DNA from: Perkinsus chesapeaki ATCC PRA-425
Lineage: Eukaryota; Protista; Perkinsozoa
Direction of reading: 5' to 3'
NCBI GenBank assembly: GCA_013115145.1
Contig: JAAPAO010000358.1
Location: forward strand, 1 to 36,814
DNA length: 36,814 nt
Made by a program: the position numbers and the translations under genes
Shown here: piece after piece, positions 8,385-33,960 of the stretch
Layout of the letters: each line of letters opens with the position of its first letter
How positions within the stretch are numbered: the stretch's first letter is position 1
The notes under the pieces: model-generated
What the model saw: the letters and a program-made list of their open reading frames with translations, nothing else
Told to the model about the DNA's origin: nothing
Databases searched by the model: none

Positions 8385-11300
8385 TCATAGGAAGTCTTCA
8401 GTTTCGGATACCTACATAAAGTGACCGGGTGGCATAAAAATGAAAAAAATAAATAAAAGTAATAAATAAATGTCACAAGGTGGCATGAAAGTAATATATT
8501 AATGTAATGAGGAGGTGGGTGCCTAAAATATCTCACCAATCCTGATAATGCATCATCCTGGTCAGATTCTTCACCATTCGGATCGAATTCCCCATCATCT
8601 TCATCGTCACTTCCAAACTCTTCGTTTTGAAGTCGCCAGATAGGATTGCTAAAATTCATTTCGAATTTCAATGCGCGCGGTCAAGTTTGTACCGTCTCAT
8701 TATCTCTCGCATTTCACTTGCCTCTCGCTCAACTTCACTCTCCGTCACCTCCAATATTCCATCTCGCCGCCGAGGCCTGACAGATATCCGAGGTTGAAGC
8801 TTGCAGGATACGAAAGAGCTCAGCATACCGCTTCGACGCAGCTCTCTCGTCTCCACCAGCTAGCGATGTCAGCCCAATCTGAAGGCCCTAGGAAGAAACG
8901 CTGATAAAATCGATCACGTAATCGGTTTACCGCATTCATATAGTCATCGTCTTCTTCGTCTTCCTCCTCCTCCTCCTCATCATCATCATCATCATCCAAG
9001 CTGCTAAGATCGGCCGGCGTTCCCACAGCACCTTGAGATGATATCCCGCCCGAGCCGGAACCAACTACCATCGAACCTGACCGACAACCATAGCACTTGC
9101 AAGGCGGTGGTACGAAGTGGAATCTAAAGCGTGATGATATGAAGTAAAATGAAGATTATGGAACAGTGGATGTTATTAGTTACCATACCAGCACATGGAA
9201 CTGGCAGAGTGTCGCTGGAGGCTATAAGCCTGTTGCTATACTTCTTTGCATCAGCCTTTCGAGCAACGGTTCAAAAGTTGAAACATCTACCCAGTGAACT
9301 CGGAACCGATAACAAGGTTCCTGACTGACTCGTTGTTGAAGCCTTCTCCTATTAGAAAGCGAGAAGAGCCACCAAAAACCGCACCCGGTAGAATTTGGAT
9401 ATCTCAAAGACTTACCAGAATCTTCTTCCGCTTCATCTCCATCATCATGGTCTTGGAAACAACTATTCGAAGGTGAACGGACCGATCGTTGTTGGAAATC
9501 TAATACTCCTCGGGTAGCCTGAGCGTCTCAACTTATTTTGTATCTTGCACGCTTCAACCTTTGATTCCTCCAGCTCCTGTACTGCTTTCGCCATCTTATC
9601 TTCTACGCTTTTGCATGGCTGATTGCCGGCAAGAGCGATATGGAAATTTTCTGATGAAGATCCAACCCAGAGTTTCACGAAAGCCAGCATCATCGCGGGA
9701 ACATCCAAATCGATCGCCTGATCGATTTTTCCCGTATCAACCGTCACTTCTATTCGACACTAACCTCCTCATCTTCTTTCACGCGCGCCACAAAATTAAT
9801 CTGATTGTCGCTCAAATCAACCTCAGTGATTTTCCTCCGATTCTTCAACGCGAATAGTAAAGTGATAAATCTACGTTGAGGAAATACAAGATTCAACAAG
9901 ATCGCAAGATTACCTACCCAAAGGTCGAGATGTAATTTCCCATCAAACTCAGTGTCTCCAGCACCGGAAAATCTCCACACGAAATCGATTGCGCGATCGA
10001 ATATACGCCGGCATCGAAAAGGAAATTCTCATCGAGTTCAAGTCGCTTCAGATTCTGAAGATATCCAAATCGATCAACTGGGCGAGCGCTCTTTACAAAC
10101 CGCCATACCCGCAGTCTTGCACATGTCTGTGTAAGGTTAAATGCAACTCCGTCCAAAAATCGGAAGGGGATCTTCTCAGGAGGTCGAGCTTGACTTTCTA
10201 AAAATAAAAGATACGCCAAATCGATCGACCGTTTCGGTTACTCACCGAGATCTGTCACAAAATCGAGGCACGGATTTCCCGAGCTCAACCGGCGATTGCC
10301 TAGTTTTGTCGTCGACTCTGAATCCATTTTTTGCATCGCGCCAATATGACATTCCGAAATAACCTGCGTTAAGAAAATGCAAGATTGACCAAGATTTCAA
10401 GATTCTCACCAAGTTCTCCAACTTTCTTCCAGTTCGTCCAATCGCATTTATAAGTCGTAAGAAAGCATCTGAGTATTTTCCGACGTAAATTCGATCGTTC
10501 GTCATGATGCAGTGCGATCGTTTCCTGGCCGGCACTCTACCATCTTGACCTGCAACTAAAAGTGTTCGAATGTCCCACCACAGAGCAGCAGCAGCAGCAG
10601 CAGCAGTGTCACCACTGTCGTGTGAGGTTCATGAGGATACCCCAATGAGCCGCCTAGATACGGAATACAGCAAGACTTTACCAGACTACTCGCTATGTTC
10701 GGAGAATCGTATCGGCTGGAAAAATGCGAAACGGTTGATCGATTAGATTGAAGTGAATCATCGCCTACGAGGTTCAACTTGGAGGATTTATTTTTCCTAT
10801 TCGCAGCGCAGTTCTTTCTGCAAGGGTCATTCGGTTGCCTCTTACCGCCAGGGTCCCGCGTCATCACAGCGATGCAACAGTGGCATGTGGGGTTAGAGCA
10901 AATGATATTTTAACCTAATCTGGTGGCTTCAGAGTTCGATCAATTTCACTGCTTCCGAATAGGTTTGTTTCGTGTTTCGGAAATTCAGAGGCAAAAAGTC
11001 ATCGCGGCATTTTTACTCCCTAACAACACGTTCAACTTACTGTGCCACAATCGGGAAAGGTATGAGTTCCTCATCGTCGACGGGAAAAATATGCATTGTT
11101 CAAAGCGAAGAACTCGGAGATCGATGAAGTGAGGCAGGATTGATGATAAGAACTGAAAGGACCTTTGAATTATCTCGCATGCTTCAACCTAGGATACCAC
11201 TGGAAATTCTCCCTCAAATAGAAAGTTATGAGCTCTCATAAATTTTACCGGATTCATCATCGAATTCCATCTGTGCTGATTTCAACAAATGAGAAATGGC

Positions 11301-12678
11301 GAATCGCCCTCCATCAGCGTCACCAAATTTTTCGCTGGCTTCCGATTTCAGAAAATTTTCTTGTTTTTTTTGGTAAATTTACTGCCTTACATGTACAAAA
11401 ATCGGGTCCATAATGCAGCGCTCGAAAAGAACGTTCCGAACTCGACTTCGAGTGGCCCGCCGAAGCGGCTCAACAATCCTCATCCAACAATCTCGACCTC
11501 TCTGAAAACAACCTATTTTGTATCATACCAGTATCAACCTAAGATACTCTCCTTACCACATTCCGTATCGTCAAGCTTCTCAAGTTCGCGTAATCGACGA
11601 GTCTTCTAAAACTGCACAAGTTGGAATCAGTCAACTTGAAAATATAATTCATGAATCGCTTCGCTCCGCCTAACTTTATTTACCAAATTTGTTTTATCGT
11701 CAAATATTTCATTATACGCCTGGCAAGATAGGGTACCCGATAGAGCTCTTGGAAACATGCATGGGTCGATGCCAATCATATACCTGCGGGAAGTTGGGGA
11801 AATTCACGGAAGAAAATTAGGAAAAAAACTAACAGGAAAGACTTGGATTTTGGAGCGCTACTGTAGTCTTCTCCACAAGTCTCTTTCACAAGTCGAATCC
11901 TCTGACATATTTTCGTGTCAAAAAATTCACAAAAAAAAGCTTTTATGTGTTTTTTGTTGAAATGCCTGCGAGTGATCGATTACGGTTATTGAGGATTTAA
12001 CCAAATTCCCCCCTATCGATTTGGTGAAAAAACCCAGAAAAATCGGAAAAATTTTCCGATTTTTCCCTACCGAGATAATGTTCCCGGAGCATCGGCTGCA
12101 GCTCCTGAGGCGTCTAAAATAACAGTTTCGATAGAATCTCTCACCGCCCCTGAAAATTGAATCACAATTCACCTTTAGTATCAACCTACCGCAAAGCTTA
12201 TGGCAGGTCGGGGGGACTCTGGTGAACCTAGAAAATATCTTTGAGAGATCAAATACTATTACACCAAACAGAGTGGTGCAGAACGGACTACGTCGGAGGT
12301 GGGGCGGCGAGTCAAGTAATATTTGTTATTTTACTGTTCTCCCAAAAACACTGCCAAATGCTTCCAAATGGCGTTCCGTAATTTCCGATTGTTCCGGAAA
12401 TTTCGGTAAATATTGATGTGCAGTTTATTTTTCGACCTGAGAATGGCTGGAGTGTATCTCGTCGTCTATCTGCAGTGAGGGGGATAATCTTCACGAGACC
12501 TCCAAATATTTTGCAGTTCTTTTGACGTTCGCTGATTTTCGTAAAATATCCAAAATTTTCCGCTTACATTCTTTTATTTCATTTTTGGAAATTTTCCGAA
12601 ATTTTCTGCTTACATTTCAGCCTCGTCGAGAAAACTGAACACCTGCGCCCACAACTCATTCGAGAGAGCTTCCACCAT
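8385..12678 (-). CDS. Multi-exon F-box/leucine-rich repeat protein with acidic C-terminal tail (exon model partial; could be two genes)
   Basis: First exon MVEALSNELWAQVFSFLDEAE (F-box). LRR segments KLENL|VISECHIG, LRVLRFEQC, LQNLKRLELDENFLFDAGV..LETLSLMGNYI and ITEVDLSDNQI. Canonical GT-AG introns (e.g. 9871-9917, 10364-10409, 8901-8930). Last exon VSETEDFL* ends at 8385. Confidence 0.7.
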
Positions 12679-12966
12679 TAAAAAATAGCAACTAAATTTC
12701 ACAAAATTTCCATTTTGTTACGCCGGAGCACCACTAATGATACCAGTCTCGTGCCATGCAATCTCCGCGAGAATCTCTACTGTTCAAGATGAGTATCTTA
12801 GCTTGAAGCCTGCGAGATACCCAAAAACCCCTTTAACTTCCTCCAAGTCACTCTGACCATTCACAAGCACCCCCAAGTATCTTAGCTCGAAGCGTGCATG
12901 ATACTCCATAGCTTCACTGACAAACTCAACACCCACTCCTTTAAGAAGCACCGAACTTTCAATCAA

Positions 12967-15900
12967 CTATTCCTCATCTCTATGATGTCGATGATGACGC
13001 CTCTCGCGACTTCTCGATCGTTCTCTTCTCGAATCTCTCCGCTCGCGATCACGATCACGGTCACGACTAAACAAATCCGTTGAGGAAATGCAAGTCAGAG
13101 CAAGATTGCATGATTCCCATTCCCATGTTTACCGAGATTCACCATCATCTCTCGCTCTTGCTCGATCACGATCACGGTCTCTGAGACGCGGGCCGAACTC
13201 GTCAAATTGCCTATGTGGCGGTGGGCCCTCATCATATCTAAGCGTTGAGGAAATGCAAGATTTAGCAAGATTACCGAGATTTGCTCTCACCTCGAGCCTT
13301 TGCCTTTACCTTTACCCCAACTGGATTCGTATGGTGGCGGTGCACCATACCTGGACAAAGAAATGATATAAATATCTTACTACAGACTGAAATGCACGCT
13401 TCAACCTCATCAAAAAATGAATTTTCCCATTCAACATATCTTTCCTCTCCATTAAATGCACGCTTCAACCTCACTAAGAATGAATATTCCCACTCAACAT
13501 ATCTTTAGTCTCCATTAAATGCACACTTCAACCTCCCCTGACCTTACCCCTTTCCACGACTGCTGCCGCCTCCTCCCTTTCCAAAATCGTCCATTCCCCA
13601 CCTCGGTGGCCCTCCCTTCCCCTTCCCCTTTCCATAACCGTCATCATATCCTCCTTTTCCTTTACCCCAGCTCGACATCCTCGGATGACTGTGATATCCT
13701 TGCTCCCATTCAGCAGCAGGTGGACCGAAGGCACTAGGAGGCACTCCAATAGAACTCTGAGGACCCTTCTTCGACTTTGGCTTTGCGATCCTAAACAACA
13801 CATCTGCGCGCGACTAATATAACTTATATTAGATTATATAAATCATTTATTACAAAAATTATATAATTCATTTTCATGAAAGAACACCCTATGAACAATA
13901 CTAAATATTCAACCCCATCATAGAGATAATCTTTTCCCATGAAAATTGCCGACTGCCCCTTTTCTCCTCCCAAAGAGCAATATTATCCAACCCAACGCCA
14001 CTTAGAGATGCAATTGGCACGAGCGGTCAAATGGCCAAAAGGTCGACTCTTTACAGTGCAATTGCCAATTGCACCGCAAAGAGCCGATCTCCCCGGTAGT
14101 CAACAGATTTCGCAAAAAAGATACCTCGCACCGAGGGGAGGTCGATTACGGACCATCGTGATTGATTCCACAAATCTTTCCAACAATACTCTTTTGATTT
14201 AAGATTGTTAATAAAATCTATAGAATTCCAATTGTCATCTTCCATAAATTAACATCAACTCCATCGCATCTCACGAAATGCTTCCACATTCCGCAAAAAA
14301 CGAAAAATTCCGAATGTCAGCTTCGAGCTTCAAACAACGAAAACTGTATTTTCGGAAACTACCTTTTTCACCGGTTATTTCATACTTTTAATCCAAGTCT
14401 AAATGGGAATATTTCAAACCCCTCCCATTATAACCTTCCGCTTCCTCTTCCTCCTCCCATCCTTCTTGGAATCCACCCCGAGACGGTTCTGCCGCGCTCG
14501 ACATCAACCAACACTCGACGACCGTCAATTTTAATACCGTCAGCCTACAGTCGGTTTAATAGGATACAATTTCGTGGCGCGTGACTTTATTACATTCTTG
14601 TATGCCTGTTTCAAGCTGCTTTCGCTGTCAAATTCAATAAAAGCATATCCTCGGCTTCTCCCATCCAAATCATGTATAATGGTCACCTGGCAACTCACAT
14701 TACCGCGCGCCACGAAATTGAATAATAGAGCATCTCATATAGCAAATGATTAAAAGATATTAATTACGATAACTATTCGACAGCTGCGTCAGTAGCTGCA
14801 GGTATTTCCACCCGAACCTTCGAGGTATCTTTTCGCACTGTGAAGATTCCCAAGGTATCTTTTCGCACTGTAAAGATTCCCAAGGTATCTTTTCGCACTG
14901 TAAAGATTCCCAAGGTATCTTTTCGCACTGTAAAGATTCCCAAGTTATCTTTTCGCACTGTAAAGATTCCCAAGTTATCTTTTCGCACTGTAAAGATTCC
15001 CTCACCTTTCGTATTGGTCCATATTCTCCAAAGATACGTTCCAATTGCTTCTCGGTCGTCTCATAGGCCACTCTAGCGACAAATAGAGTTTTAAATGGAT
15101 CTCCAGATACCTGAAAAAGATACTCTTGCGAATTGTAAAGAATTTAAAGATATTCTTCGCACTATAAAGACTTTAAAGATACTCTCCGCACTATAAAGAA
15201 TTCAAAGATATTCTTCGCACTATAAGGACTTTAAAGATACTCTCCGCACTATAAAGAATTTGAAGATATTCTTCGCACTATAAAAAAATTAAAAAAAATA
15301 ATGTATGGAAATTTATTTATATAAATTTATATATGGAAACTGTTAACGGCGGTATTGCTAGTCTTCTTCCCACCGACGGCGCTACTTTATCGTTATCCTG
15401 AGGCTTATAGTCATCTCGTAGACGTTTAATAAGCTCCTCGTAACTGACAAGTAATATCTTTCAATATATCAAATGCAACCTTCAACCTCGACCACCAAAT
15501 GCACGCTTCAAGCTCAGATATCAGTATTTAGATTGCTAATATCAATGTTACATGTCCACCCGACACCCGAAGCTGAGCTTCCTCCGATTCTCAGAAAATA
15601 AATTAATACGCCGCAAATGAAAAATGAATAACCAATCTGCACGTTGCATAAATTCCACTACCTCCCTCAGGAAACGAAGGGGAATTCATTGGACTATAAA
15701 TCAAAGAGGAGATGCAGGTGAACCGCGAAGAACAATTTCTCCTCTCAATGGATACAGGTTAACGGAGTTGACCCAGTTAATTCGGGGACGACTGGCCAGA
15801 GTGTGCACTGAAACCTCTAAACGCTCGGAAGGAAGGAAGGAATCAAGAAAGCTTGCATACCCAGTACGAACAATACACCCGGCGAATCTCCGAATGGAGT

Positions 15901-16743
15901 AAATGAAGGAATTCAACGGTAATAATAACAGAACGCTCCAACAGAAAATGATACACATTATGATTTTAAGCGACCACATTTTTGAAGTATTAGTCTTCGA
16001 TCTCGAAGATTTGTCATCGACCCTTTCTCACCAAACTCTTCACCGCACAAATCAACCATAGTTCTGCGGACTGTCCTCCCGAGCATCTTTCCAAATTTTC
16101 AAATAACTCATTTTCATGGGGTTTACTAGGCCATTGTTGCGTGAAGAGAATTAAGATATTTCAATCTTTCTACCACTGCGATTTCAGGAATCTTTTATGG
16201 GACACTGAAGCACGGTGTAACCTCCGACTTGACGGAGAGGGGCGCCACTATATCCAACTAATTTCATATTTATATCCGAGTGGTCGCCGGTTCGAATCCC
16301 CCGACGGTTATTATTACTTTTCCTTTTTCTCCTTGACTTTCCGTTTCTTCCTCTCCAAAGGAGTTTCATTGTGTGTTCGCTCCGGTGGCTCACCGTCCTC
16401 GAAGTACTCCACGAAGTCGGTTAAACCTGAATGGGACATCTTAGCTTTAAGCGTGCATGATACTAGAGAGGTCAAGTTATGAATTTCAGTTGAAACTATC
16501 TCAGAGGCCCCCAGGTTTAAGCATGTGGAACATAAAGAATAATACATCAAAAACAAGCATATCAGCCTACTATCCCCCAGTATCCAAGGTGGAAGCACGC
16601 ATGATCAAAAGAAGGTTGATTCACTTACCAGTCAAATGACGAGCAGTCACAGGAGCCTTCCGGATTTGCGGCTTCTCGTAAGCTTGCGGCGGCCTCGGGC
16701 AGAAGAGGGCCAGCAAATGCGGGGGCATTCCCTGAGCGCTCAT
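12967..16743 (-). CDS. SNRNP70: U1 small nuclear ribonucleoprotein 70 kDa (multi-exon)
   Basis: N-terminus [19 protein letters not shown]; [24 protein letters not shown]; [36 protein letters not shown] / SRGYAFIEF / [32 protein letters not shown]; RD/RE/RS tail ending HHRDEE* at 12967. Confidence 0.95.
13390..13535. repeat. About 63-64-bp intronic tandem repeat (2.3 copies) carrying half of the 28-bp element (AAATGCACGCTTCAACCTC)
   Basis: Units start at 13390, 13454 and 13517. Confidence 0.8.
14822..15001. repeat. 30-bp minisatellite x6 in an SNRNP70 intron (GTATCTTTTCGCACTGTAAAGATTCCCAAG)
   Basis: Near-perfect units; starts 4 nt inside the GTGAG donor at 15005. Confidence 0.95.
15117..15284. 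repeat. 29-bp minisatellite x~6 with alternating A/B units in the adjacent SNRNP70 intron
   Basis: Units AAAGATATTCTTCGCACTATAAAGACTTT and AAAGATACTCTCCGCACTATAAAGAATTC alternate; the acceptor is at 15111. Confidence 0.9.
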
Positions 16744-16882
16744 GGTGGAGAAAGGGAAACTTCCAGATGCTTGACATATTTCGTATCTTGCACGCTTCAA
16801 GTTTAGATACCATGCAGTTCTGAGAACCCGTCAGCCCACGATAAGGTTGATTAATGCTTTTCACAGACTGAAAAGATTCTCT

Positions 16883-17070
16883 TCAGTATCCCCCTCCCTG
16901 ATTGATTTCAACTGCATACACACAACTAAATTCACTGGGCGCCGCAGAATACCGTTGAGGAAACACAAGTCTGCGCAAGAGCTCAAGATTCACCCAAATC
17001 GGTTGTCCCAGCTGGCAATGCCTTCGTGCTCAGTTGCCTTGACGATTGGTACTATTATACAGGTCGACTG
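16883..17070 (-). CDS. Last two exons of a possible small unannotated spliced gene (...IVKATEHEGIASWDNRFG|EFSCVYAVEINQGGGY*)
   Basis: A GT-AG intron at 16935-16993, of the same repeat family as other introns here, joins two open frames. The start was not identified. Confidence 0.35.
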
Positions 17071-17465
17071 ATTGATCTATTTATTAAATAGATTCCTATC
17101 TTGTACTGTTGTGCTCCCTTTGTTCATTAGTTTGCTACTTCCCATATATGTACACAGAAGTTATGAAGACTTATCGACTTCAGGATGACCGTAGACCGGC
17201 GTATCGTTGACTTAATCAAGCTTAATAGCTCAGACCCTTCCCCTTCAGTTGATTAACACTTGCTTCACTCTTCTTCATTCAACATCGCTGGACATCCCTG
17301 TAGGTCCAGTGATATAGCCTGGAGTTCAAGACAGCAGCCGTATTGTACGGGAATAGCTGTCCAGAGACCCCCCTTCAAAGATGACTTAGGTTAACGACGT
17401 TGCTGATCTTTAATTGACAATGCCAACAAACAAGCAATAAGGTGGAATGAAATCCAAAGGACTCA

Positions 17466-17858
17466 TCATGATTCGAAATCATCTTTATAATACAAAAGAT
17501 ACGCCAATCTCATCTTCCTCAGAACAAACCTCGCAATTCCCATGACAAAAAGAACTACACACGCGAGCGCTAGGAGGCGTAAAAAGTAGGACGAGCAATA
17601 GCCGCCATCATCTTCATCACGCTTCTGCTTGATATCGGTTTCAGAAAGACTCGATAGACGCCTGCGAACCGTCCGCTCGTTTCTAGCCATAACATCGTCG
17701 TCGACGTCACTTGATAAAGTCGGCTCCACCTGAAAAAGCGCTCTTTGAAGGTAAGAATAAAACAGTATCAGTTTTGGTAGCCTCTTCACCACTTCTCCAG
17801 CCCTTACCTTATCTATCTCATTTTTTATGCGTTTCCTCACAGTTCCAGACGATGTCAT
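17466..17858 (-). CDS. Hypothetical protein with a C-terminal transmembrane helix (tail-anchored-like); probably spliced, 5' end uncertain
   Basis: 130-aa ORF with hydrophobic FLRLLALACVVLFVMGIARFVL near the C-terminus; an internal GTAAG donor. Confidence 0.5.
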   Translation of the reverse strand: MTSSGTVRKRIKNEIDKVRAGEVVKRLPKLILFYSYLQRALFQVEPTLSSDVDDDVMARNERTVRRRLSSLSETDIKQKRDEDDGGYCSSYFLRLLALACVVLFVMGIARFVLRKMRLAYLLYYKDDFES

Positions 17859-19311: not shown

Positions 19312-19333
19312 AACAGGGGCCCTGTTACAGGGC
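19312..19333. other. 22-bp double palindrome (inferred TSD AACAGGGC)
   Basis: A ACAGGG[G]CCCTGT[T]ACAGGG C. Confidence 0.7.
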
Positions 19334-19570
19334 TCATCGAATGAATAAGCGTTGCTGAATTAAGATATGTTTTGAAAATCCATTCAGATTATAATCGATA
19401 ACTAATCGGAAGTCATTCTCCAGGAGGATGACTAAGCGGAGAAGGATTCCTCCTCCGTTTCTTGCCGTCCAGCTACTCTAAAGTATCTCTTAAGTGTTTA
19501 AGTTGAGTATAATACCACTAAAGCTTACATAATGAAATCCACTCAACCTCGCCCAGCGACACGCTTGTGG

Positions 19571-19592
19571 CTGACAAGTTGTCAGTGACAAC
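19571..19592. other. 22-bp double palindrome (inferred TSD CTGACAAC)
   Basis: C TGACAA[G]TTGTCA[G]TGACAA C. Confidence 0.7.
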
Positions 19593-20286
19593 GAAGATTT
19601 TCGTGGCGCGCGAAACAGTTCCAGACCCAATTGGATATATTAGAGGACTGTTTACACCACACCCAGAAAGTTTTAAGTCTATGGATCTCTTCTGAATACT
19701 GGTATAGGAGCGTATCTGAGTTGACCCATACTGAACCGTGCATGCTTCAACCTAAGATATCTGCACCAACTAAACCAAAATAACAACTTGAACTAATTAA
19801 ATAAGTTACGAATTATAGCATAATCCCAAGTCCAAAATTATTATTAGTATCCTTCGTCCAATTCCACTGCTAAACCCGTCTGGGAAGGTATCAAACGGAA
19901 ATGACATCGTTAATATTATTGTATTGAACTGAGACAAGACTGGAAGAACCAAAAACGATTGACTTCGAATTAGTTCATTTCCAATCAATCAGTATTCTAA
20001 TTCGAGAAATTAATCTCCAATCATCGATTAGTAATCGACTCCATCTCTAGGGGGCCCTAACGGACATAAACCTGCCTGAAAAATTTACCACGATAAATTT
20101 TCACTGAGAGCAAGAAAATCATATCATTCATCTTCACCCCACAAATCAACATTCAACCCCAGCTACTTGCCATCTTCCTAAATATCAATAATATCGAAAA
20201 GTCTAACTGATAGCAATAACGTCAAAGTACAGGAAAAATATAATTTCCCTCACCGTCAAAAAACGAAAATTTTCTCGTTTTTTGGC

Positions 20287-22560: not shown

Positions 22561-22573
22561 TTCGCCAACCCCC

Positions 22574-25500
22574 TTAAACGTAGCTTCGTACAATTGATAT
22601 AGCTGAACCGGGAGAGCGCTTCTTTCCGAACCCGACAAACGCAAGTTCGTTCCTCACCAGCTCCTCGGTAACTTCTTCAATTTCCATATAACCTGTGTTG
22701 GGGAAACGCTGAGTTAAATCGATCGCTCGATCGATTTGCTTACCTTCCAAGTCCGATATAACACTCTCAATCTCAAAGCTGAAAAAAGCAAACCAAGTAA
22801 ACACAACAAATGTATGAAAATGACGTCCTTGGGAATCGAACCGGCGACCTCTCGCTTACTCGTGGAAAAAACACGCCGAGGAAACGCAATCAACAGCAAA
22901 TTCGAAATTCACATCATCCTCCAACTGAAAGAAATCAAATCGATCACGCGATCGATACGAGCCATGAACTCACCGCCGCCTTGGATGTATCAGAGATCGT
23001 GTCAACTTCGTAAACTGGCAAAAACGACGAAAATTTTCGGGAAAAAAAATAAAAAAACTCACCCGAAGATTCTTCCGACCTCAAATCGCACCCGAAAGAA
23101 TATCTGAAAAATTTCCGTATTTTCCCCAAATTTCCGTCCTTCACCTTCGGCATGCATTGGCTGCTAGACCTTCCGATAAATTCTCCATGAACTGAAAACG
23201 AAGAAAATTTAGGGAAAAATTTGCGTCGCTGTAATTGCCCAGGTTTGAAGACAATCCGAAAAATGAAGGGGAAACATTCGGACAAATTCTGAGAAAATGA
23301 TTTCTGAATTTTCTTATCTGATTAATTTCGCAGACAAAAAATTCCTCCGCGTGCGGATCCAGAATCTTGTAAAATGCAGCGTTTATATTTTCCCAGATTT
23401 TTCCTGGTTTTTTCGAATCGTCCTTCTCAAGAAACTCACCTGTGAAAGAGGTGTTGAAGATTCTGACGAGGCCGAAAAAATTTCTGGGAAATCTGAAACA
23501 AATACAGAAATTTCCGGAAATTTTCTGCCTACCTGACATGCTATCCACAGCACTGATCGACTCACCAGAATCGTCACGCGCCTGAAAATTATTCCATCAT
23601 CGACGAGAATCTTTTGACCTCACCGAAAGTGTTGAACTTGATAAGATATTCCCGACAACCTCCTCAGCGAGCAGCACTTCTACGGACATGTCAAATCTTG
23701 AAATCTTGCATTTCCTCAACGCATCACCCCACCATTGATTTATAAAAATAGGAACCTTCTCATCCTGAAACGCTTTTTCCTGAAACATGCTTTATTTTTC
23801 CATAAATTTTTCCCGATTTTTTTCTGTTTCTTCCTCGCTGGCCACCTCGTCCAGTCTCCGCAAGAACGCTTTTTCCTGCGGCAAAATTTCCACAATTTCC
23901 GAAAATTTTGCGCAGATTTCCCGCACACTCGTCAGGACACTCCACGTGCTGATCAGATACACTTCGTGCCGCTGTAAGGCGCCAATGCAGGCTCGACCGA
24001 ACTCGGCAAGCCAAATATTCTCTCCGCCGGATTCGAAGCGATGCCCGTTAACCTCCGTCAAATGCTCCAAGGCCCGCTCGACCTCCTCGTCAACTTCTCC
24101 GACGAATTCGTTGGTCGCCAAATCCAGCCACTCTCGATTGCAAAATGGCTTCATCGCTTGGGCTAAATGGATCGCCCTCAATCCATGAAGACCGTTGTGG
24201 AGCAACAATGATCGAAGAATCAAGCAAATGTGCACCGTCGTTGAATTCCAAATTTTCAAATCTTCAATCGCCGCCAAGACACTTGTCCAGTGCGCCGGAT
24301 CCAGTTGATTTTCGGCCGTCAAAAACTCAACCATCTTCATCACGCTGAATTTCCTTTCGCCGATCGTCGATATTTTTTTCTGAAATTTTATTTCTTCCGT
24401 AAATTCCGGATCATTCGTAAGCGCTCGAATCAACGCCCCCGTGGCCGTTTCTGGGCGAATCTTCAGTTTTGAGAATGCCGTCAAGAGTGCCACAATTTGC
24501 ACTTGGTTCAAGCTGGCAATCACAGCTGGTCGGCACAGACTCTCCAATAAGGACTTCAGAGTCTGAAAAAATGGGGAAAAATCCTGGAAAATTCAGAAAA
24601 ATTGCTGGGGGAACAGGTTATCGAAATACCAATACTGGAACTTCCAGTCTGGAAGTGTGCATGCTAACAATTACTGTAATCATAAGAAACGGAACTTCTG
24701 TGAAATAACGTTCCCTCAGCAAACCCGCGCATGAAACGTCATGAAGAATTCAAAGAGGAAAATACCTACGAAAATTTCCAAAAACTCCCAAAAATTTCCA
24801 AAGTTTCCAAAAATTTCCATGGAGGAATTTCAACTTACACATTTCTGCAAGATAAAGGAAATAATGAAAAACACGATTTTCCCCGAAATATACGAAAATT
24901 TTCTCAACTTTTATTTCACTTTTATTAATGAGGCTTCTCCAAGGAAAAGACCTTCCCCCCCAAAAGAATTTTTCGATGGCCAAAAATAACTCACCGATTT
25001 CATAATTGGTTCTGGTATCTCCTCCATGTGATGACTCAAGACGGCCAAAAGTTGCTGAATTTGTGCAGCAGCAAGTTTCCCTGTCCCTTTCTTCTTGATC
25101 GTCCTCAGACAGCCAATCGCTAGTTTTTCGGAAAAATTCGACAACTTCGATAATGTACAAAAAACCGTCGCCGAATTGCTCGCTGACCAATCCGAAAGAT
25201 TCCTCTCGCCCACAGCCGCCAGAAGATCTCGGACCGCACTCGAGAGAATCGGCCGTCTTTTCTGCACCGCCAACAGTAATTGCGTTGTTGCCGTTTCGTT
25301 GAGCGTCGATGCATATCTTTTTGCACGCACGCACAAGAGGTCCAAAATTTCCTGCTCCGGATCGAGGCAAGTATTCAACCTCGACACCACCGTCATCATT
25401 ACCAGCAATTGCTGCGCCGTCACTTCAGGTTTCTCGCGCGCCAATAAATTCAAGAATCTCTCGCGCGCTTTGTCCATGAACTCTCCATCAAAGACCTCCG

Positions 25501-26425
25501 ACCGCGCAAAAATTCCCAAAATTTGCACCAGTTGGAAAATTTCCATTTTTCCCAAAAATTTCGTCGCCTCTTTCGCGATGTCGTGGAGCAAGCAATAATC
25601 GATCAGATCCTGTCTCTGCGTGGCGTCCGCCAACTGCAACAATTTCCGTACCGATCCAACCTTTCCAATTCCATCTGAAGCCTTCACAGCCAATAAATGC
25701 TGAACCCTCTCGCTCGGTTGAGCATTCAACTTCGCCGCCGCAATCATTATTTCTCCAAAAATATCCGACCTTGAAGCGTGCATCTCACACACAGCTGCAA
25801 ATATCTTTTCTATCATCTCCGCATTTGTATCAATTTTCTCATTGCCAACCACCAACCTCGGTTGCATCCTCGCCAGACAGCAATACGCCTCAATCGTCCA
25901 CCAGTTTAATTCCTCCATCTGGACCGCCAAAGCTTCGATGCACATTTCCGCGAATCTAGGATCCCTCAAATGTTCGCATCTCTCCAAAGCCAAACATGTC
26001 CGAGCCAGCAACTGCGCGTCACCGCCAAGTCCATGCAACAACGCCGAAAATATCTCCTGTAAGATCTTATTCGGCAATTTCTCGCGCGCCACAATATTAA
26101 TCGCCCCCACAAGCTCCTTTCTCGAGTATCTTTCAATTCCGCAAGACACTGCCCGACCAATGGCAGCCGTTCCGAGTCGTCCAGATGAAAATTTTCCGGA
26201 ATTTTCCGAAAAATTTCCGAAACTTTTCAGAAAGTTCCTTCTTGTTGATCGCCGAGATACTCCTCCAGTATGCAGCAGACGGGCCGGTGTCACGCCGATT
26301 TTCGTGGCGCAGTGACGCGACGGTTTTCTCCTCAACCGTTTCAAAAACAATATGGCAGATTTCGGCAGTTCACGAACGCAACGGCGTCTACCGCAGGACT
26401 TCAGGGGCTCGACCATTTGCAACAT
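22574..26425 (-). CDS. Large alpha-helical repeat protein (HPR/OPR/FAST-like; putative organellar RNA-binding), multi-exon
   Basis: Long ORFs 24911-26425 and 23792-24547 with recurring helix pairs such as MEIFQLVQILGIFARSEVFD, WSASNSATVFCTLSKL and LNQVQIVALLTAFSKLKI. The family call is by pattern only. Confidence 0.55.
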
Positions 26426-26816
26426 CGAGGAATCTTAGCCTGAAGCGTGCAACATACGAATTAGGTTAACAAAACACAATCGGTTCCACCGAAACCTTCA
26501 CGAAAGAGATACTGATAATACTGACCATTCAATCAAAAAAATCTCGCTCCACATCACATTTTCCCGCGCGCCACAAAACCACCAACCAGCAAGAAATCTT
26601 TTAATATCAAAAATGTAGCTCTCCGCGGCAAACGACTTTTTCATTATCCGACACATCGGTATGACAGGGTCTGCTACAGGGGGAATATCACCACCTCGAC
26701 GAGCAAGTATGAGAACTAGATTAGATATAATCACTACGTTAGGAAAATAATCAACAACAACAACCGTCACGCGCCACAAAATGAGTCAGTAATGAGCGTG
26801 TAACTGTGAAGGTAAA

Positions 26817-29800
26817 TTATCCGCCAGCCGATTCCAAAAGCCTCTCGTTTAAAAGATTCTCTTTTCCTGTTTCTTCCTCGACAACCTTCGGCTTCCACAA
26901 AGTGATGAGCATCACTCCACTGATCACCGTAAACATACCTAAATCGATCACGTGATCGATTATCAACCATATCATATCACACAAAAGTCGCCTTGGGGAT
27001 TTCCCGAAAAGAATCCATTTCTCCCGTTGCGATTATTAGAAAAATATTCCTGAATCGCTTCGCTCCGCCTATCATCCAAAAAACTGTAGAATAGCCCTTA
27101 GCAATTTTCCCAAAATAATCTTCCAGAAGATATAAAACGTGAATCGCTTCGCTCCGCCGTCTTCCTATTACCTATCAACTTTGTAGCTCCCGGAGCTGCC
27201 CCCAGGAACATATAAGCAAATATTAATCCCAGAATAGAGTTAGATGCCGCAATGACATTGACCACAGCAGTACAAGGATACGCCACGGCTTCATTCAAAG
27301 CCGCCACGCCGATGAACTGCGCGAGACCGGACACGTTGGGCCAGAAATATCTGAAAAAACGCTCCAACTGAATCGCAAACGTGGCCAGCGCTCGCACTGT
27401 TGTCGGTAATAATAGCATTTATCGAATATAACCTCGCTGAGATTATTTTCTGTAAGTTTTATAGTAATATGTAGTCAACTTGAATCCGCATCAGATCGAC
27501 CAAAATAAAATGTGATTGATAACCCAAGTCAACGAAATAAATTAATTTGCTACTTTGACCAGAAATATGGAACAAATTGCCAACTATCTTTCATCACTCT
27601 CCGACAAATCGAGGGAGGGGGAGCGCAACCTTTGTTGCACTGGTAAGACTTTCATGAAAATTAAATAATTATAAAGGGAATCATTTAAAGAAGTCGGACT
27701 CTGCACCAATCCATGATGTGAACCCCTCCCGTGGCCTCACGTAGAGGAGACCGATTCTCCAGCCAAGCACAGCTAACTACTGTTGAGCCGTATTATGGTG
27801 TAAATAAATTAATCCATCTATTAGGTTAAATAATAACCAAAAACATCAACGCAAAGTACTCAACCCACCGCCCAAGAAAGTTAATCTTCAATTCTCAAAA
27901 TGGCTCCCCGGGCGACAGGGGGCCTCACGGAAAAATAATTTAACTTAATAATAAAAATACAATAGGCGACACAGTACGGGGCTTGCCCTTTTCAATCAAG
28001 TTGGCCGCCAGTCCCGCGTGACACAATCGGCAGCTTCAGCATTGCCAGTGAAATCCCTCCTCTATTACAACGATCCATAATCCTTAGGCGCCTCGGAAGC
28101 TCCTTGTCTCGCCGCATAGACAAGCGCAATAATTCCAATAAAAAGCATGGTGAACAACCTGCCTGTGAAGCGGGATCTGAAAAAAATCGATCACGTGATC
28201 GATTATGAAGAATAACCAAACTCAGCTAGTCTCACCGAAAATGCCTTCCTAATGCGGCGGACGCGAGATTCGAGAGGGAAAATTTCCGGAATTTTTGGAA
28301 AATATATTTGATGACAAAATAGAGTCTCAACTAGATAATCTCCTTCGCCTCTCGGAACAAACATACGATAAAAAATTAATTAATTTCGGAAAAAAATTAA
28401 ACCAAACAAATAGGAGATTATTTCCCCCTTGAACGTAGACCGCACTGCAGTGAACTCCTCCAAACTGAGCGAGCAAGTTCTCCCTCATTTTCTAGGACAT
28501 TTTCCCATTCCAAAATCGCCAAGAACTCTCCTTGTCCATTGCACTGTCCGGCAGTCCCTATTACATTGCAGCCTGTCCCTCAATACAGGTATACCGCATG
28601 AAGAGCAAACTACTAGCAAAAGTAAGCATGCCAAAGATAGCATAGAAAAATCCAATCAGATGGCCCACTCGAGAATCAAACGCGGCCATAACCACCAAGC
28701 CTGACACCAGGAAATCTTGCTCATCTTGCTAATTCTTGCATTTCCTCAACGCTACCTGTCAGAACTATCAAAATTGCCACCCCTTGCATCAACGACAGTT
28801 TTTCATGATACAGAAAATGACAGGCTATTCCGACCACCTGAAAAAAATAAAAAAATAAGAAAAATAAAAAAGAAAAAAAAGAAAAAAAGAAAAAGTTACG
28901 AAAATTTCACAAGTTGACAGAAATACAAAATATAATGATTACATGTCACCGAAAATTCAGGTTAGTTTGCCTCGTCGTTTGTGCGAGTGCGGTCGCATAA
29001 CGTTACGCGTCACCAAAGGCCGCCTACGATGGGATTCACCCTGCTGCAACAGCAGCTCTTCCTGATGTTTTGATACGTGTCAGCTTTATTACGTGTATTG
29101 CCGTATCGTCTTAGTTGATAAAGTCGTAACTTACTATAAAGCTAGTTTCGAAATTGCTCAACCACAATTGTTGAGTTGAAGTGGGACGTATACGTTGAAT
29201 GCAAAGGTACTGGACGAATACCTTTGAGATGCTTTCCTATTCTGAGATGACAAAGGCAAAACTGCTGGATGAAACAATGATGGATCAACAGAAAGGAGAA
29301 AATGACACCACTGGACCAACTGGCCACTGGATGTAATAACACTGGATCAGATGATATACACCCATCGCACGCAACGTGTGCGTGCAGACGATTGTGCTGA
29401 GTATGCTGGGTAGCCAATGGCTACCAGGTAGCCAATGGTAGCCAATGGCGATTGTGCTAGCATGGCTACTAGCCATGCTATACCGTAATACACATCGCAT
29501 TTCAGCCCTCATCCCTCTGTGGTACTACACCTTCCAGCATGCACGTTATGGCGTATTTCTCGCTTGCCTTGTCTTCACACGCTAGCCGTTTCGCAAGATA
29601 TTAATCATGGAATGCCACTCATAAACTACTTATTATCAAATGTAGGATTCTTGCTGTTGCATAACGTTTGATCTGGTATAACACCCTCCGCTCCCGGGTG
29701 AAGGGCTCGTCGTCAACAGTTGTTTTCTGTACAGTGTAAATATAGCACCCAACTTGCTGGTGGACGGACTCTACGAGTACCACCGATTCTCGCGCTCGAG

Positions 29801-31206
29801 TATGATAATTTAACGGCAAGAAAGAGACAAACAAATTCTCCCCAAAATGGGGAAAATCAAAACAACAAAAAACGCTTGAAACCCCTCTCCCATTAATACC
29901 ATAATATCCGATGACGATACTGCCATCAACGGTCCTGTCGAATCCGGATCAGTTGCGAATGCCCGCTGAATCATCAACAACGAGAACCCAATGCATAGAC
30001 CTGTAAGCGGAAAGCGCTCGCCCGGGTGATCGATTTAATAATACCAACGTACCTTGTCCGACTGTTAGAGCTTTCGATGTGAAACTAAGCGTGGATGAGA
30101 ACTTTGCTCCACCGAGTCGATAAATTCTGACATCCTCATCGGTGTAGAAAATCGTACCAAATTTGAACCTGGGAATTGTGGTGTCCAATTTGAAGGGCGA
30201 TAAACTAGTATTAAAAATAAAGTAATAAAACGGACAGCATTATTAAACAAATAACGAGTCTCTTCTTTGGCGCCACCCTAATAAGATTCCTAATCTTATA
30301 TAATACATCTCGAAGCTCCGTGAAGATAAGTTCTCTCAATGGCACTCGTGAAAGACGAGCCTCAGGCAACTGGACGACGACGCCGACGATGAGCTGCCGC
30401 CTTTCGTTCGAAGCCCGAAAATCTTCTAATAATGTCCAATTTATCGAGAGGGAAGAATTGTTTCATCACCATTGCTCCATATTTGGTATCATCACCATTG
30501 AAGGCGATGAATGACTATATAACGTCGGCTTCGGCGGCGGCGGAAAAAGGAAAAGCAGGAAAAGCCTGCTGGAATCGAGACTGCAGTAGCAACTCAGCAG
30601 TTGAGGTGTAAATGATCCTCCTTCATGACACACTTCGTGCCACGAAGAAGGCATTAAAAAGTACTAAAAGTTATCACTGATATACAAGACGGTCTGTGAT
30701 GTTAGTTGTTAAATTTATACAGTATCATCATTAGTTATATCATTACATTATTAGATGGCAAATCTTACCATTTAAAACCTCTGATGACCAATTAACAGAT
30801 AAATGAGTATATGTACTTCCGTGAAGAGAAAATCGATAATAATAAAGTGATATAATATTATAATGCAAAGTGATATAATAAAATGATAATAATAAAGTAA
30901 TATATATTTGTTAATCAACTATATATAATTTTCTCAATGTCTCAATAGAACCTATCGGATCAATTGCTGAATGTTATCCATATGATTCCCTAAAAGAACC
31001 CTTGCCCATCATCATCATTACTACCACAAATAGACCGCCGGTATCATCGCCAACACTCCACAAGACGCCCAGTTCTGACCGACTGTCGCCCACGGGTTCG
31101 CTCCTTCTTGCTGGTTGCAATAAGATATTAAAAAATTAGACACGCCGAACGAAAAGCATGCCACCAGAGACCAAAGGACTGCCTGGGGGGCCACCTCGAT
31201 CGCCAT
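26817..31206 (-). CDS. EamA/DMT-like multi-pass membrane transporter, paralog A (middle exons not found; possibly disrupted)
   Basis: Exon 1 MAIEVAPQAVLWSLVACFSFGVSNFLISY (31206-31024); exons VVGIACHFLYHEKLS, GLVVMAAFDS..GFFYAIFGMLTF, RFTGRLFTMLFIG, FWPNVSGLAQFIGVAALN..YPCTAVVNVIAASNS and GMFTVISGVMLITLWKPK align with paralog B. Confidence 0.7.
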
Positions 31207-31664
31207 GCCAGGAAAAAAGCTCACTGAAATCGATCACGCAATCGATAATACGATATGATATTAAGTAGTGTTCAATCACTTTTTTCCTCCCGATCAAGCA
31301 GGAAAATTTTGTTACGGAATCGCTTGCCTTGGAGATTCAAGGTTTAATCTCCGCGTTAGCTCACCGAGCTCATTAAGACGACGTCGTTCAGGAACACCGA
31401 CGGAGCTCCATGCTGGCGCCTGGAACTACATAAAATATCTGCATTCCATATCCCCTCCTCCTCCTCCGTATCACTAGTACCCATGGTAAAACTAGATTAC
31501 CAATTAATAACACCACGACATCAGAAGGATCATTCTGAAATGCTCTCACACGGCAATGTAACAAATATCAACCTTTTCAAGACAACCGAGGTATCACTCG
31601 GAAAGCTCCGTCATCATCATCACTGCGCATTAATAAAGTGAGCTCCTATACGGTCGCTCCATGC

Positions 31665-31732
31665 GTACCTGAATGGCCTAACGGTAGAGCACTCGGCCTT
31701 AAACCCATTGACCCTTGTTCCATCCCCGCGGC
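31665..31732 (+). pseudogene. Degenerate tRNA-like sequence (A-box and B-box remnants)
   Basis: TGGCCTAACGGTAGAGC (D-arm/A-box-like) ... GACCCTTGTTCCATCCCC (T-arm-like); the stems do not pair fully. Confidence 0.3.
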
Positions 31733-31739
31733 CTACTAT

Positions 31740-33960
31740 TTAACATCTAATTTCTCCGCTACTTGTGGCTGAACCACAAAAGCTGCTTCCGTTCGTCGAG
31801 TCATTTGGGAGCTTTAAATCTTTCTCTTTCACAACATCATCCGAAGACTCCTGAAGAAAATAAATTTAGATCACCGATGAATATACCCTCCTCCGCAAAA
31901 GATTAATCTTGTTTTATGAGTCTATTTAGGTATGTGCGAGATAAGAGGCAACTCAAAGGTTGAAGCAGGAAAGATTCATCGAAGGTTAACCAGTTGACCT
32001 CCTCTCACCTCCTTCGGCTTCCATAAAGTCATCAGAGATACGCCAGCAATTACAAAAAACATACCTGAAAAAATGATAAGATCGAACAGTAAACCAAAAA
32101 CTGACAAGTCAACAGATATCGAAAAAACTTTCGTACATACGCTCCGAATAATTTCGCGGAAAATTTCTGAAAATTTCTTACCAATTATTTTTGGCGTTCC
32201 AGGAACAAGTCCGAGTAGGACCCAATTAAGCAATAAGACAACTATCGAATTCGATGCCGCTATGACGTTAACCACTGCTGTTGAGGGGTAAATGAGCGCA
32301 CGGTTGAGGGCAAGGACACCGACGGCTTGGGATGCACCCGATACCATTGGCCAGATGTACCTGGTGAATCAACCGTTTGGGTATCATGCACGCATCAGGC
32401 TAAGATAGAGAGGATCAATCAGTGACGAGAAAATGCTATCTCGGGATGACAAGTGCAACAACCAGGAGAGCAGATCGATCGTATACATGCAATTAATCCA
32501 CAACAACCAATACGTATCCAAGCTTGAAGCGTGCAGGATACAAAATACGCCAACTTACATATCAGCCCACAAATATGAGTTTGACACAATCAATCCTCCA
32601 TTAAATCCAGCCGAAGCAAGCGCAACTAGTCCCATGAAGAACATTACACCCATTCGGCCAATGAATCCCGACCTAAAACAAAAATGGTAAACAAAAATCG
32701 CTTCGCTCCGCCCAATCCTTACCAGGCGTCTATTCCGTCGATACAAGAGCTTCGGATGCAGACTATACTAGCCGCAAAACTGAGCATTCCAAGTATGGCG
32801 TAGATGAATCCAAGTGGACTTCCACCAGAGCTCGAGTCGAATGAGGCACCCATTACGATGAGACCTGAAAGATATCTCAAGTCGAGCGTGCAAGATACAA
32901 AATGGGTCGGAAGTTACAGACAAAAGCATTCAGGCTGAGTACTCGAAAATATCCTCGGTTGGAGCGTGCAAGATACACAATAGGTCGAAGAAAAATCCTA
33001 CCGGTTAGCACGACTAATATTGCTATTGCCTGCGTCCACGATAGCTTCTCATTGTACACAAAATGACAGTAAACGCCAATAACCTGAAAAGAAAGAACAT
33101 AACCTTCCGGAGCAAAATAGATACTTTAAACGCCGTCAAGAAATCGAATAGAGCCCAATATTAGAAAGATGACCCCAACAAAGGGCGGAAACATTTCTCC
33201 CTAAATAAAAACTGCTTGCGAAAACCGCACTCAAAAGGAGCGTAGAAGCGATTCACTTTGAAGAATTTCTTTGGAATTTTTGGGGTGGTAAGGTATTACT
33301 AGTATATCGGAGGAGATGACAGCAGTGAGCGGCCCTGATGCGGCTGGGTCGGTAGCAAACGCCCACTTCATCATTAGTTGGGACAAACCAACACAGATAC
33401 CTGACAGAAGATAATGATACATAGAAAGGGAGGATGTAGCTACCTCCCACTAACGTGAGTATCTTAGCTCGAAGCGAGATTTCGGCAGGCGGCTGATGCT
33501 TTTCGCCATTGGAAAGGTAGACGTATCCTGCCTCGGCGAGCTCGGGACTGCAAGTCGAGCTTTTTTGGATCTTTTGGGATTCCAGAAAGTCAGCAGTAAA
33601 GAAGACTCTACCAATTTTAAACCTGAGAAAAGGTATCTTGGGTTGAAGCGTACAAGATCCGTAAAAAGCTGACTTATTGCCTAGAGCAGAACGACGAAAA
33701 TTATATCGATAACTGATAACGGTAACTTCGAAACCCGACGTATCTTAGGTTCAAGCGAGCACGATACATAATAGGTCAGCTTACCAAAAGTAAACTCCAG
33801 TTAGTACTCCTATCAATCCCGAAGTGAACCATATCCATCCAATGACCGCCCAAGGGTCGATACCATCAACATTAGTGTACGATATCAAAAAGTTAGTCAG
33901 GCCGAACGTAACGTTGGAGATGACGGACCAGCCGACGCAGTAGGGGGAGACCTTCACCAT
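31740..33960 (-). CDS. EamA/DMT-like multi-pass membrane transporter, paralog B (about 9 exons, apparently complete)
   Basis: MVKVSPYCVGWSVISNVTFGLTNFLISY...GICVGLSQLMMKWAFATDPAASGPLTAVISSDIL...YNEKLSWTQAIAILVVLTG...YPSTAVVNVIAASNSIVV...GMFFVIAGVSLMTLWKPKE|ESSDD...IRC*. Two EamA-like halves; splice phases are consistent. Confidence 0.85.

Follow-up and report, generated by a model that had tools for sequence, protein, structure and literature searches.

Why does one short sequence with inverted-repeat ends recur in gene after gene of a single stretch of DNA? The question is raised by a 36,814-nucleotide stretch from Perkinsus chesapeaki ATCC PRA-425 (GenBank assembly GCA_013115145.1, contig JAAPAO010000358.1; hereafter the window, contig C2791 of the 41.7-Mb, 3544-contig assembly). 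Its initial annotation listed 17 copies of a 28-bp repeat, GTATCTT...AAGATAC, and offered two explanations: a minimal element resembling miniature inverted-repeat transposable elements (MITEs) and tolerated only in introns, or a structured cis-element for splicing or DNA binding. Our analysis points, with a probability of about one half, to an old, decayed, introner-like non-autonomous miniature DNA element that can be spliced on both strands. Other explanations are weighed below, each beside the evidence that bears on it.

Abundance and clustering

All 17 copies are present at the starts first listed, 15 of them within seven substitutions of the consensus in the initial annotation (ungapped scan), and the copy at 32872 is indeed 27 bp long. 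The three sets of half copies were also recovered, and both ungapped and core-based scans left 1-8.3 kb of the window free of copies, as had been claimed. Five window copies lie within three mismatches of the same consensus, compared with none in 100 dinucleotide shuffles. The genome-wide search proposed with the initial annotation yields at least 438 good copies: a degenerate 28-mer pattern matches 97 sites with up to one mismatch and 438 with up to three, and the exact 15-nt core matches 157 sites, six of them inside the window, while reversed-pattern controls give 0 in each case.

The copies are far from evenly spread. With the core alone as criterion, the 36.8-kb window contains 22 matches, compared with 6 in 110 kb of control loci that had been chosen for a reason unrelated to the element, which marks the window as a hot spot. 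Around 30 protein-kinase genes (107 kb), 12 copies with up to seven mismatches were counted, or 0.11 per kb. Well-preserved copies are strongly clumped; a 44-kb contig (C1906) with 10 exact cores is also a hot spot, and regional densities vary by a factor of more than 10. Single introns can hold tandem or inverted pairs, and core-only tandem arrays are found as well. Among the loci compared, no paralogous cassette-bearing segments were found, and the assembly contains no second haplotype of the window locus (188-nt and 166-nt probes). Exact-pattern scans of metagenome and genome contig collections, which hold no Perkinsus DNA, gave 0 matches, and the literature searched contains no description of this repeat in Perkinsus.

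These data bear on the idea that the copies are ends or fragments of a larger, described transposon, or merely a chance likeness among tiny introns with strong splice signals, which we consider very unlikely. Dada DNA transposons have been described in P. marinus (PMC3706591), and a retroelement-like RNase H open reading frame (ORF) lies at 93-1430 of the window, both of which count for a larger parent. However, the retroelement region (1-8.3 kb) is free of copies, and no second genomic site matches probes that take in the DNA between paired copies. The same two probes (188 nt and 166 nt) brought to light no longer element with the same termini. A chance likeness is at odds with the reversed-pattern controls, and cassette-free introns of the same genes share nothing but GT..AG with the unit.

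Extent and anatomy of the unit

The length of 28 bp first given for the unit falls short, as conservation runs on to about position 40-45. The unit, or cassette, consists of the 28-mer GTATCTTAGGTTGAAGCRTGCAAGATAC followed by a tail, AAAATAGGTCAACTTAC, about 40-45 bp in all. In an ungapped profile of 116 distinct copies, the left edge at position 1 is sharp and the tail reads aaAAtAGGTyaa(cTTAC). The part of the core outside the splice sites is TTGAAGCNTGCA. On the opposite strand the sequence becomes GTAAGTTGACCTATTTT-GTATCTTGCACGCTTCAACCTAAG-ATAC; one end carries a canonical 5' splice site, and an AG lies close to the opposite end. Within this unit of 41-45 nt, the 7-bp inverted repeat takes an internal, not a terminal, position.

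Variation is concentrated at positions 1 (G/A), 6, 7, 10 (G/C), 18 and 23, and about 21% of copies begin ATATC. All other positions of the 28-mer are at least 90% conserved in the pattern-ascertained set, a figure that becomes about 70-95% when copies are collected with only the core or only the arms as criterion; positions 1-4 are conserved to the same degree as the interior. Among the 18 sites found by the arms alone, the arm spacing is 18 nt at 14 and 17 nt at the remaining four; spacings of 16, 19 or 20 nt were not seen in that search. Copies deviate from the consensus by roughly 15-20%. Linked variation is significant only between neighbouring tail positions (GGTCAA versus GGTTGA), and no clear subfamilies were found within the 28-mer.

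Introns built from the unit

Protein homology confirms four introns that carry the unit, and shows that the unit can form the whole of an intron. The clearest cases are a DHBP synthase gene (locus L039, contig C1873) and a DPH1 gene (L030, C981), in both of which donor and acceptor lie inside the unit. In the former, two exons match positions 118-138 and 142-188 of the DHBP_synthase profile with one split codon between them. The intron (43 nt, GTAACT...GATTAG) consists wholly of the unit, read on the strand opposite to the 28-mer-then-tail order (R orientation; F denotes the reverse case), and stops 4 nt short of the last base of the 28-mer. The DPH1 fragment is 89% identical to the P. olseni protein. 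Where P. olseni DPH1 (KAF4746611.1) reads HSCLTPVDQTVVYTIYVLVRISYDV, the L030 DNA encodes HSCLTPVDQTVLYT-I|YVLVRISYDV, and its Ile codon is split by a 44-nt intron, GTAAGTTGCCGACCATTTTCGCATCTTGCACGCTTCAACCTAAG (GTAAGTTGCC...CCTAAG); the corresponding P. olseni junction is ...YTI|YVLVRISYDV. The ATAC that completes the palindrome, being the last 4 nt of the 28-mer, is therefore exon at this locus and encodes the Ile-Tyr common to P. olseni. A HMMER search with the L030 query returned only spliced P. olseni DPH1 models, and a word search returned no match. The same stretch (L030:440-700, minus strand) contains in turn a 41-nt cassette-free intron, a 45-nt micro-exon and the 44-nt cassette intron, all of which can be read through in frame, an arrangement of the sort that gene finders overlook.

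In the window, the gene for the U1 small nuclear ribonucleoprotein 70-kDa protein (U1-70K, minus strand) has one exon (16630-16743) matching positions 2-24 of U1snRNP70_N (PF12220) and another (16320-16442) matching positions 35-74. The 184 nt between these matches, with a cassette at each end, are therefore a U1-70K intron. Its only in-frame acceptor (TTAAAG) lies inside the copy at 16436, so that the last 9 nt of that copy are exon. The two exons and their intron (16320-16743) make up the N-terminal part of U1-70K; the two cassettes lie in its first intron, and a third copy lies in the leader.

An F-orientation case is offered by an EF-hand protein gene (L013), in which the loop FAKFDT|DGSGEIEY is joined across a 69-nt intron, with weak Pfam support (E=0.011). 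The R layout recurs beside a TPP-enzyme domain (L057). In a kinase gene (L062), an intron with its donor at position 1 of the unit was not confirmed; the loop length of cyclin-dependent kinases varies at that place. Introns sharing the unit thus occur in unrelated genes, among them those for DHBP synthase, DPH1, an EF-hand protein, U1-70K and a membrane protein.

The U12-type 5' splice site is /RTATCCTT and the branch site of these introns is TCCTTAAC, and the unit resembles both. It could be asked, then, whether the copies mark introns of the minor spliceosome, with RTATC as the splice-site match at position 1 and, on the other strand, CCTAAG as the branch-site match, and the roughly one fifth of copies starting ATATC would suit such introns. 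We regard this as extremely improbable: the donors of the confirmed introns, GTAAG or GTAAC, lie outside the 28-mer, no U12 small nuclear RNA match was found, and the best U6atac match reached 20.9 bits, below the gathering score of 33 (part of the candidates scored). A relic of the spliced leader was likewise considered and rejected. The best local alignment of the unit to the Perkinsus spliced-leader sequence ACCGTAGCCATCTTGGCTCAAG (PMC9399869) scores 7, a score reached by 317 of 2000 shuffles.

Orientation and strand neutrality

The strand of the host gene was called from flanking codon usage only, excluding 20 nt on each side of the 28-mer, for the 113 copies with at least 350 nt of flank. 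The calls were 41 F, 47 R and 25 ambiguous (binomial p=0.59), in line with the claim that both orientations occur relative to the host gene. Per-position conservation over positions 1-40 is nearly the same in F and R copies (r=0.90). The unit is therefore best regarded as one DNA entity, and a profile that is the same in both transcript orientations is a poor fit to recognition of an RNA sequence.

The tail behaves differently. A GTAAG-type donor on the R strand is found at the tail of 27 of 47 R copies versus 7 of 41 F copies (p=1.5e-4), and a pyrimidine-rich YAG on the F strand at the tail of 20 of 41 F copies versus 7 of 47 R copies (p=1e-3). These orientation-specific motifs lend independent support to the strand calls. 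The body of the unit is orientation-neutral, and its tail end is shaped by splicing. In the noisy predictions of the codon-usage model, F-type introns start at GTATC or up to 17 nt upstream of it and end at unit positions 45-51, and R-type introns start in the tail and end at the CTAAG in the 28-mer or 4-20 nt beyond. The R reading provides a near-complete mini-intron, to which the tail contributes the 5' splice site and the 28-mer, 4 nt short of its end, a usable AG.

Strand neutrality also favours the main rival explanation, in which the repeat acts in the host as a cis-element recognised as DNA. It would be a binding site of fixed length, GTATC-N18-GATAC, with its own specific core, and its copies would be maintained by purifying selection rather than being relics. 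The putative binder would act on transcribed DNA that is later spliced out; a domesticated transposase, a chromatin factor or a transcription-coupled factor are candidates. The shared F and R conservation profile would be expected of such a site, as would the fixed arm spacing (18 nt at 14 sites, 17 nt at four), the contrast between the free positions 6, 7, 10, 18 and 23 and neighbours that are more than 90% fixed, the persistence of C at position 17 while its CpG partner at position 18 varies freely, and the copies just upstream of start codons. Against this reading, uneven conservation is due in part to how the copies were found, and neutral decay would be expected to change the length at about the rate observed (4 of 18 sites). 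A regulatory site also sits poorly with the many introns of the same genes that lack the unit, with the more than 10-fold variation in density between regions, and with the graded series of copies, which takes in degenerate ones, half copies and tandem arrays of the core only. We know of no protein that binds the unit, which also counts against it. On balance a DNA-level signal is possible but unlikely.

Folding of the unit as RNA

The second reading of the initial annotation, a structured cis-element, is not supported: covariation is absent, the fold is weak and conservation is indifferent to transcript orientation. The T-A to C-G changes in the stem of the copies at 8784 and 32514 do exist, but they do not amount to compensatory covariation. 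A C-G at pair 6-23 is present in three of 113 copies, these two included, and the pair is broken in 46 (C-A, T-T, T-C, A-A); with 46 mismatches against three C-G pairs, covariation at this position can be dismissed. Pair 7-22 is broken in 36 copies. Across the 113-copy alignment, 82.6% of stem cells are paired, versus 82.7% in column shuffles, and the covariation score of 0.070 compares with 0.066 in shuffled alignments, 147 of 500 of which score as high.

A pre-mRNA hairpin that defines tiny introns, or that presents splice sites or a spliced-leader acceptor, is hence a very improbable explanation. In its favour, the two 7-nt arms are able to pair, 28-mers folded in isolation reach -1.7 to -7.3 kcal/mol (lowest z, -2.4), and in R introns ending in CTAAG the stem would span the 3' junction (AAG|ATAC with GTATCTT). 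Nevertheless, whole cassette introns are no more stable than their shuffled counterparts (z -0.3 to +1.4), stem pairing and covariation equal those of shuffles with pairs 6-23 and 7-22 often broken, conservation of the non-palindromic core does not differ with transcript orientation, and no Rfam family matches.

Origin of the repeat

The introner-like reading draws on the abundance and clustering of the copies, the tandem and inverted pairs, the core-only fragments, the strand neutrality and the continuum of decay, together with the restriction to DNA that is removed from mRNA and the existence of whole introns made of the unit. We infer from these features an origin by transposition and a great age of the family; any present function beyond the provision of splice signals would be of the same conjectural standing. 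The element would have entered, on either strand, DNA that is removed from mRNA (short introns, and leaders or spacers between tandem genes), or would have survived only there. In the F reading, a donor at or just upstream of GTATC would be used, and the tail may have evolved into a pyrimidine-rich YAG acceptor at positions of about 45-51. The MITE-like half of the initial annotation thus holds as far as a dispersed element in spliced-out DNA is concerned, but "only in introns" is too narrow, given four intergenic or leader copies and two coding look-alikes.

Several observations weigh against such an origin. Target-site duplications were sought at lengths of 2-5 nt and at every combination of boundaries tried, and none was found, in agreement with the initial annotation. 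The inverted repeat is internal, not terminal. Neither an autonomous partner nor a longer parent element was found (two unique probes and a search for Y1 transposases), and no recent mobility is visible, as the copies stand roughly 15-20% off the consensus. Moreover, the ATAC of the DPH1 copy is host exon, so that a model in which the whole 28-mer was inserted fails for this copy.

The last point leads to a variant that we consider improbable, in which the mobile unit is the adjoining 41-44 nt, not the 28-mer, and on the R strand forms an exact minimal intron (GTAAG...CTAAG). In this variant, insertion would occur without duplication beside a host RTAT/ATAY that pairs with an internal GTAT/ATAC "guide", and the target would supply part of the palindrome. 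Its one direct support is the DPH1 copy, whose terminal ATAC belongs to the ancestral coding sequence (Ile-Tyr, as in P. olseni); positions 1-4, conserved like the interior, also fit.

Cassette sequence in coding exons

Two cassette-like sequences lie in coding DNA. In one (L027:4237-4281, minus strand, contig C802), 24 of 28 positions and a cassette-like tail lie in frame in a 336-aa THUMP-type methyltransferase ORF. The sister-lineage ORF P0162 (57% identity) is continuous at this site, and the residues encoded by the cassette, VSKLAACMIPERL, align with a helix of archaeal Trm14, IARTVGEAIFERL; this copy is therefore coding. Either a cassette has been exonised or converted here, or the copy hints at where the family originated. 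The other, at 25761 of the window, was not among the 17 copies first listed. At this place the P. olseni protein differs in sequence and is two residues longer.

Copies and genes in the window

Coordinates of the copies and related features are collected in Table 1. Genes were modelled with a codon-usage log-odds model trained on 27 long ORFs (kinase-locus ORFs and two exons confirmed by P. olseni), which performed better than the choice of introns by open-frame length alone, a procedure that proved too noisy. The model over-extends introns, and it mis-set the donors of the DHBP synthase and DPH1 introns. Most gene models in the window were read by eye from three-frame minus-strand translations and GT..AG sites.

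Table 1. Copies of the repeat and related features in the window. F and R, orientation relative to the host gene; intron positions are followed by the strand of the gene.
Feature	Positions	Strand	Orientation	Setting
28-mer	8784-8811	+	R	Body of 52-nt intron 8777-8828(-); GTATGC donor 17 nt upstream, CTGTCAG acceptor 7 nt downstream (frame and GT..AG by eye)
28-mer	9540-9567	-	F	Inside 64-nt intron 9519-9582(-); position-1 GT mutated to GA; donor GTACAG 15 nt upstream, acceptor CTCAG 21 nt downstream
28-mer	11170-11197	-	F	In 96-nt intron 11153-11248(-)
28-mer	11520-11547	-	F	Body of 55-nt first intron 11502-11556(-); GTAAGG donor 9 nt upstream, TTTTCAG acceptor at unit position 46
28-mer	12793-12820	+	R	Intergenic
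28-mer	12877-12904	+	R	Same spacer as copy 12793, 84 nt away
Half copies	13390-13535	-		Three 62-nt tandem units, core only (TGCACGCTTCAACCT on plus strand), without arms
Half copies	15471-15522	-		Two adjoining partial copies, core only
28-mer	16436-16463	+	R	3' end of 184-nt U1-70K intron 16445-16628(-)
28-mer	16580-16607	+	R	5' end of U1-70K intron 16445-16628(-); GTAAGT donor 21 nt upstream
28-mer	16783-16810	-	F	Leader, 40 nt upstream of U1-70K start codon 16741-16743
28-mer	19733-19760	-	F	F relative to the minus strand; GTAACT 48 nt upstream and CTCAG 17 nt downstream would allow a 93-nt intron
Look-alike	25761-25788	+		ATATC arm and 13/15 core bases; confirmed first exon of FOZ60_008831 orthologue
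28-mer	26430-26457	+	R	Ends 4 nt before start codon 26423-26425 of FOZ60_008831 orthologue
28-mer	32381-32408	-	F	3' end of 198-nt membrane-protein-gene intron 32361-32558(-); tail reaches CACCAG acceptor
28-mer	32514-32541	+	R	5' end of 198-nt intron 32361-32558(-); tail supplies GTAAGT donor 17 nt upstream
27-mer	32872-32898	+	R	Second of two tandem units in 137-nt intron 32865-33001(-); CTTTCAG acceptor 7 nt downstream
28-mer	32949-32976	+	R	First of two tandem units in 137-nt intron 32865-33001(-)
Half copy	33458-33478	+		Minus strand GCTTCGAGCTAAGATAC; within membrane-protein gene
28-mer	33633-33660	+	R	Between exon 1 and later exons of membrane-protein gene
28-mer	33740-33767	+	R	In 72-nt first intron 33713-33784(-); tail supplies GTAAGC donor 16-17 nt upstream

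The description of the copies as mostly intronic holds for 12 of the 17, which lie in spliced-out parts of genes, but not for four that are intergenic or in leaders. Eleven copies fall in eight modelled short introns, and the twelfth (33633) is taken as intronic by position only. In the sense of the genes, 11 of the 17 copies are R and six are F. Several introns of the same host genes carry no cassette. The intron models agree with the earlier observation that copies often lie near splice sites, and in a number of cases copies supply them. For the copy at 9540, the frame shift between the flanking open frames fits the 64-nt intron. An ATAG at position 35 of the copy at 11520, if used as acceptor, would run into a stop. 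Similarly, in intron 33713-33784 the downstream CAG must be used, because an internal CTAAG acceptor would create a stop. The copies at 32514 and 32381 share one intron, with their tails pointing outward.

Outside introns, the copies at 12793 and 12877 share the spacer between an RS-rich gene (stop codon 12970-12972) and an F-box-like gene (ATG 12676-12678), both on the minus strand. The copies at 16783 and 26430 stand just upstream of start codons, as first noted. In the latter, CTAAG gives an AG 8 nt upstream of the ATG, which, judged from the sequence, may serve as a spliced-leader or 5' untranslated region acceptor. The gene in question (ORF 24911-26425, minus strand, 504 aa) is 53% identical to a hypothetical protein of Perkinsus olseni (FOZ60_008831). 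The 62-nt tandem array of core-only units (13380-13545) is unique in the genome.

The coding signal of the codon-usage model at 8.3-34 kb lies nearly all on the minus strand, as does every gene resolved there. The genes follow one another in a head-to-tail array and are separated by very short spacers; the ATG at 8657, for instance, comes after a stop near 8665. An organism with trans-splicing of its mRNAs would be expected to show this layout. Long ORFs are few, there are no tRNA genes and an Rfam search of the window gave no family matches. Pfam searches, run with single exons rather than spliced joins, returned nothing for most window exons.

Two further repeats were observed in the window. 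A tandem repeat at 14823-15001 has a 60-bp period and units that are 97% identical. Near the start of the window, the ORF at 93-1430 has an RNase H domain (PF00075, E=4e-7) and is followed by two 540-bp direct repeats (1576-2109 and 5028-5567), 87% identical and 3.45 kb apart. The ORF and the repeats may be a degraded long terminal repeat retroelement; this retroelement-like region is without cassettes.

Comparison with known systems

If the introner-like reading is correct, a unit of ~45 nt that forms whole introns either way would be among the smallest intron-forming repeats seen, and introner activity would be pushed back to the perkinsid branch. The repeat also bears on gene annotation. 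The cassette introns measure 43-70 nt, many are open in frame and some terminate within the repeat, which makes it easy for gene finders to read through them. Were the copies instead selected in both orientations, they would represent a new signal at the level of DNA, associated with spliced-out sequence in a trans-splicing organism. The variant with a mobile unit of 41-44 nt, if true, would make this the smallest intron-generating element known and an instance of eukaryotic guide-directed, target-specific insertion.

Among known systems, the Perkinsus unit shares features with two kinds of small non-coding repeat. Like MITEs, it is small, non-coding, present in high copy number, clustered and found in both orientations, and it contains an inverted repeat. 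MITEs, in contrast, have terminal inverted repeats and a target-site duplication and usually measure 50-800 bp, whereas the Perkinsus unit is below 50 bp and its repeat is internal. A classical MITE was rejected on the two counts of terminal repeats and duplication. Bacterial repetitive extragenic palindromic (REP) and IS200/IS605 hairpin elements also combine a short hairpin beside a conserved tetranucleotide with a fixed length and the absence of a target-site duplication. The ATAC flanking the DPH1 intron, a host sequence complementary to the internal GTAT, recalls target recognition by a guide sequence. These systems, however, are prokaryotic and depend on a Y1 (HUH) transposase, and the likeness rests on one locus. 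A search of the genome for Y1_Tnp found none, and an IS200/IS605-like system was accordingly set aside.

A closer parallel is given by introners. Like those of Micromonas pusilla and Aureococcus anophagefferens, the unit is non-autonomous and generates or occupies introns genome-wide. Introners of these species, and those surveyed more widely, are about 100-200 nt or longer and are detected as near-identical introns; the Perkinsus unit is far shorter and older. Introner families both with and without inverted repeats or duplications are known, and insertion in opposite orientations is recognised. Perkinsus is absent from the main text of the introner survey of Gozashti et al. 2022 (PMC9860276).

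The lineages closest to Perkinsus (Amoebophrya, Polarella and Symbiodinium) have introners with inverted repeats, some of them bidirectional (PMC7789003; bioRxiv 10.1101/2020.10.14.339549). As with the dinoflagellate introner-like elements of Polarella glacialis and Symbiodinium and the introners of Amoebophrya, look-alike introns occur in unrelated genes of Perkinsus, inverted repeats are present, splice sites are supplied by the element, and, as in some classes of those elements, either orientation is used. There are also differences. In those elements, a target-site duplication of 3-8 nt is present and comes to serve as a splice site, whereas none is detectable in the Perkinsus unit, and many of their copies are young and species specific, whereas the Perkinsus copies are diverged. 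Amoebophrya introners have non-canonical boundaries and repeats at the intron ends, in contrast to the canonical GT..AG and internal repeat described here. Finally, the Perkinsus unit measures only about 41-45 nt and, unlike the elements of these relatives, is common in intergenic leaders as well.

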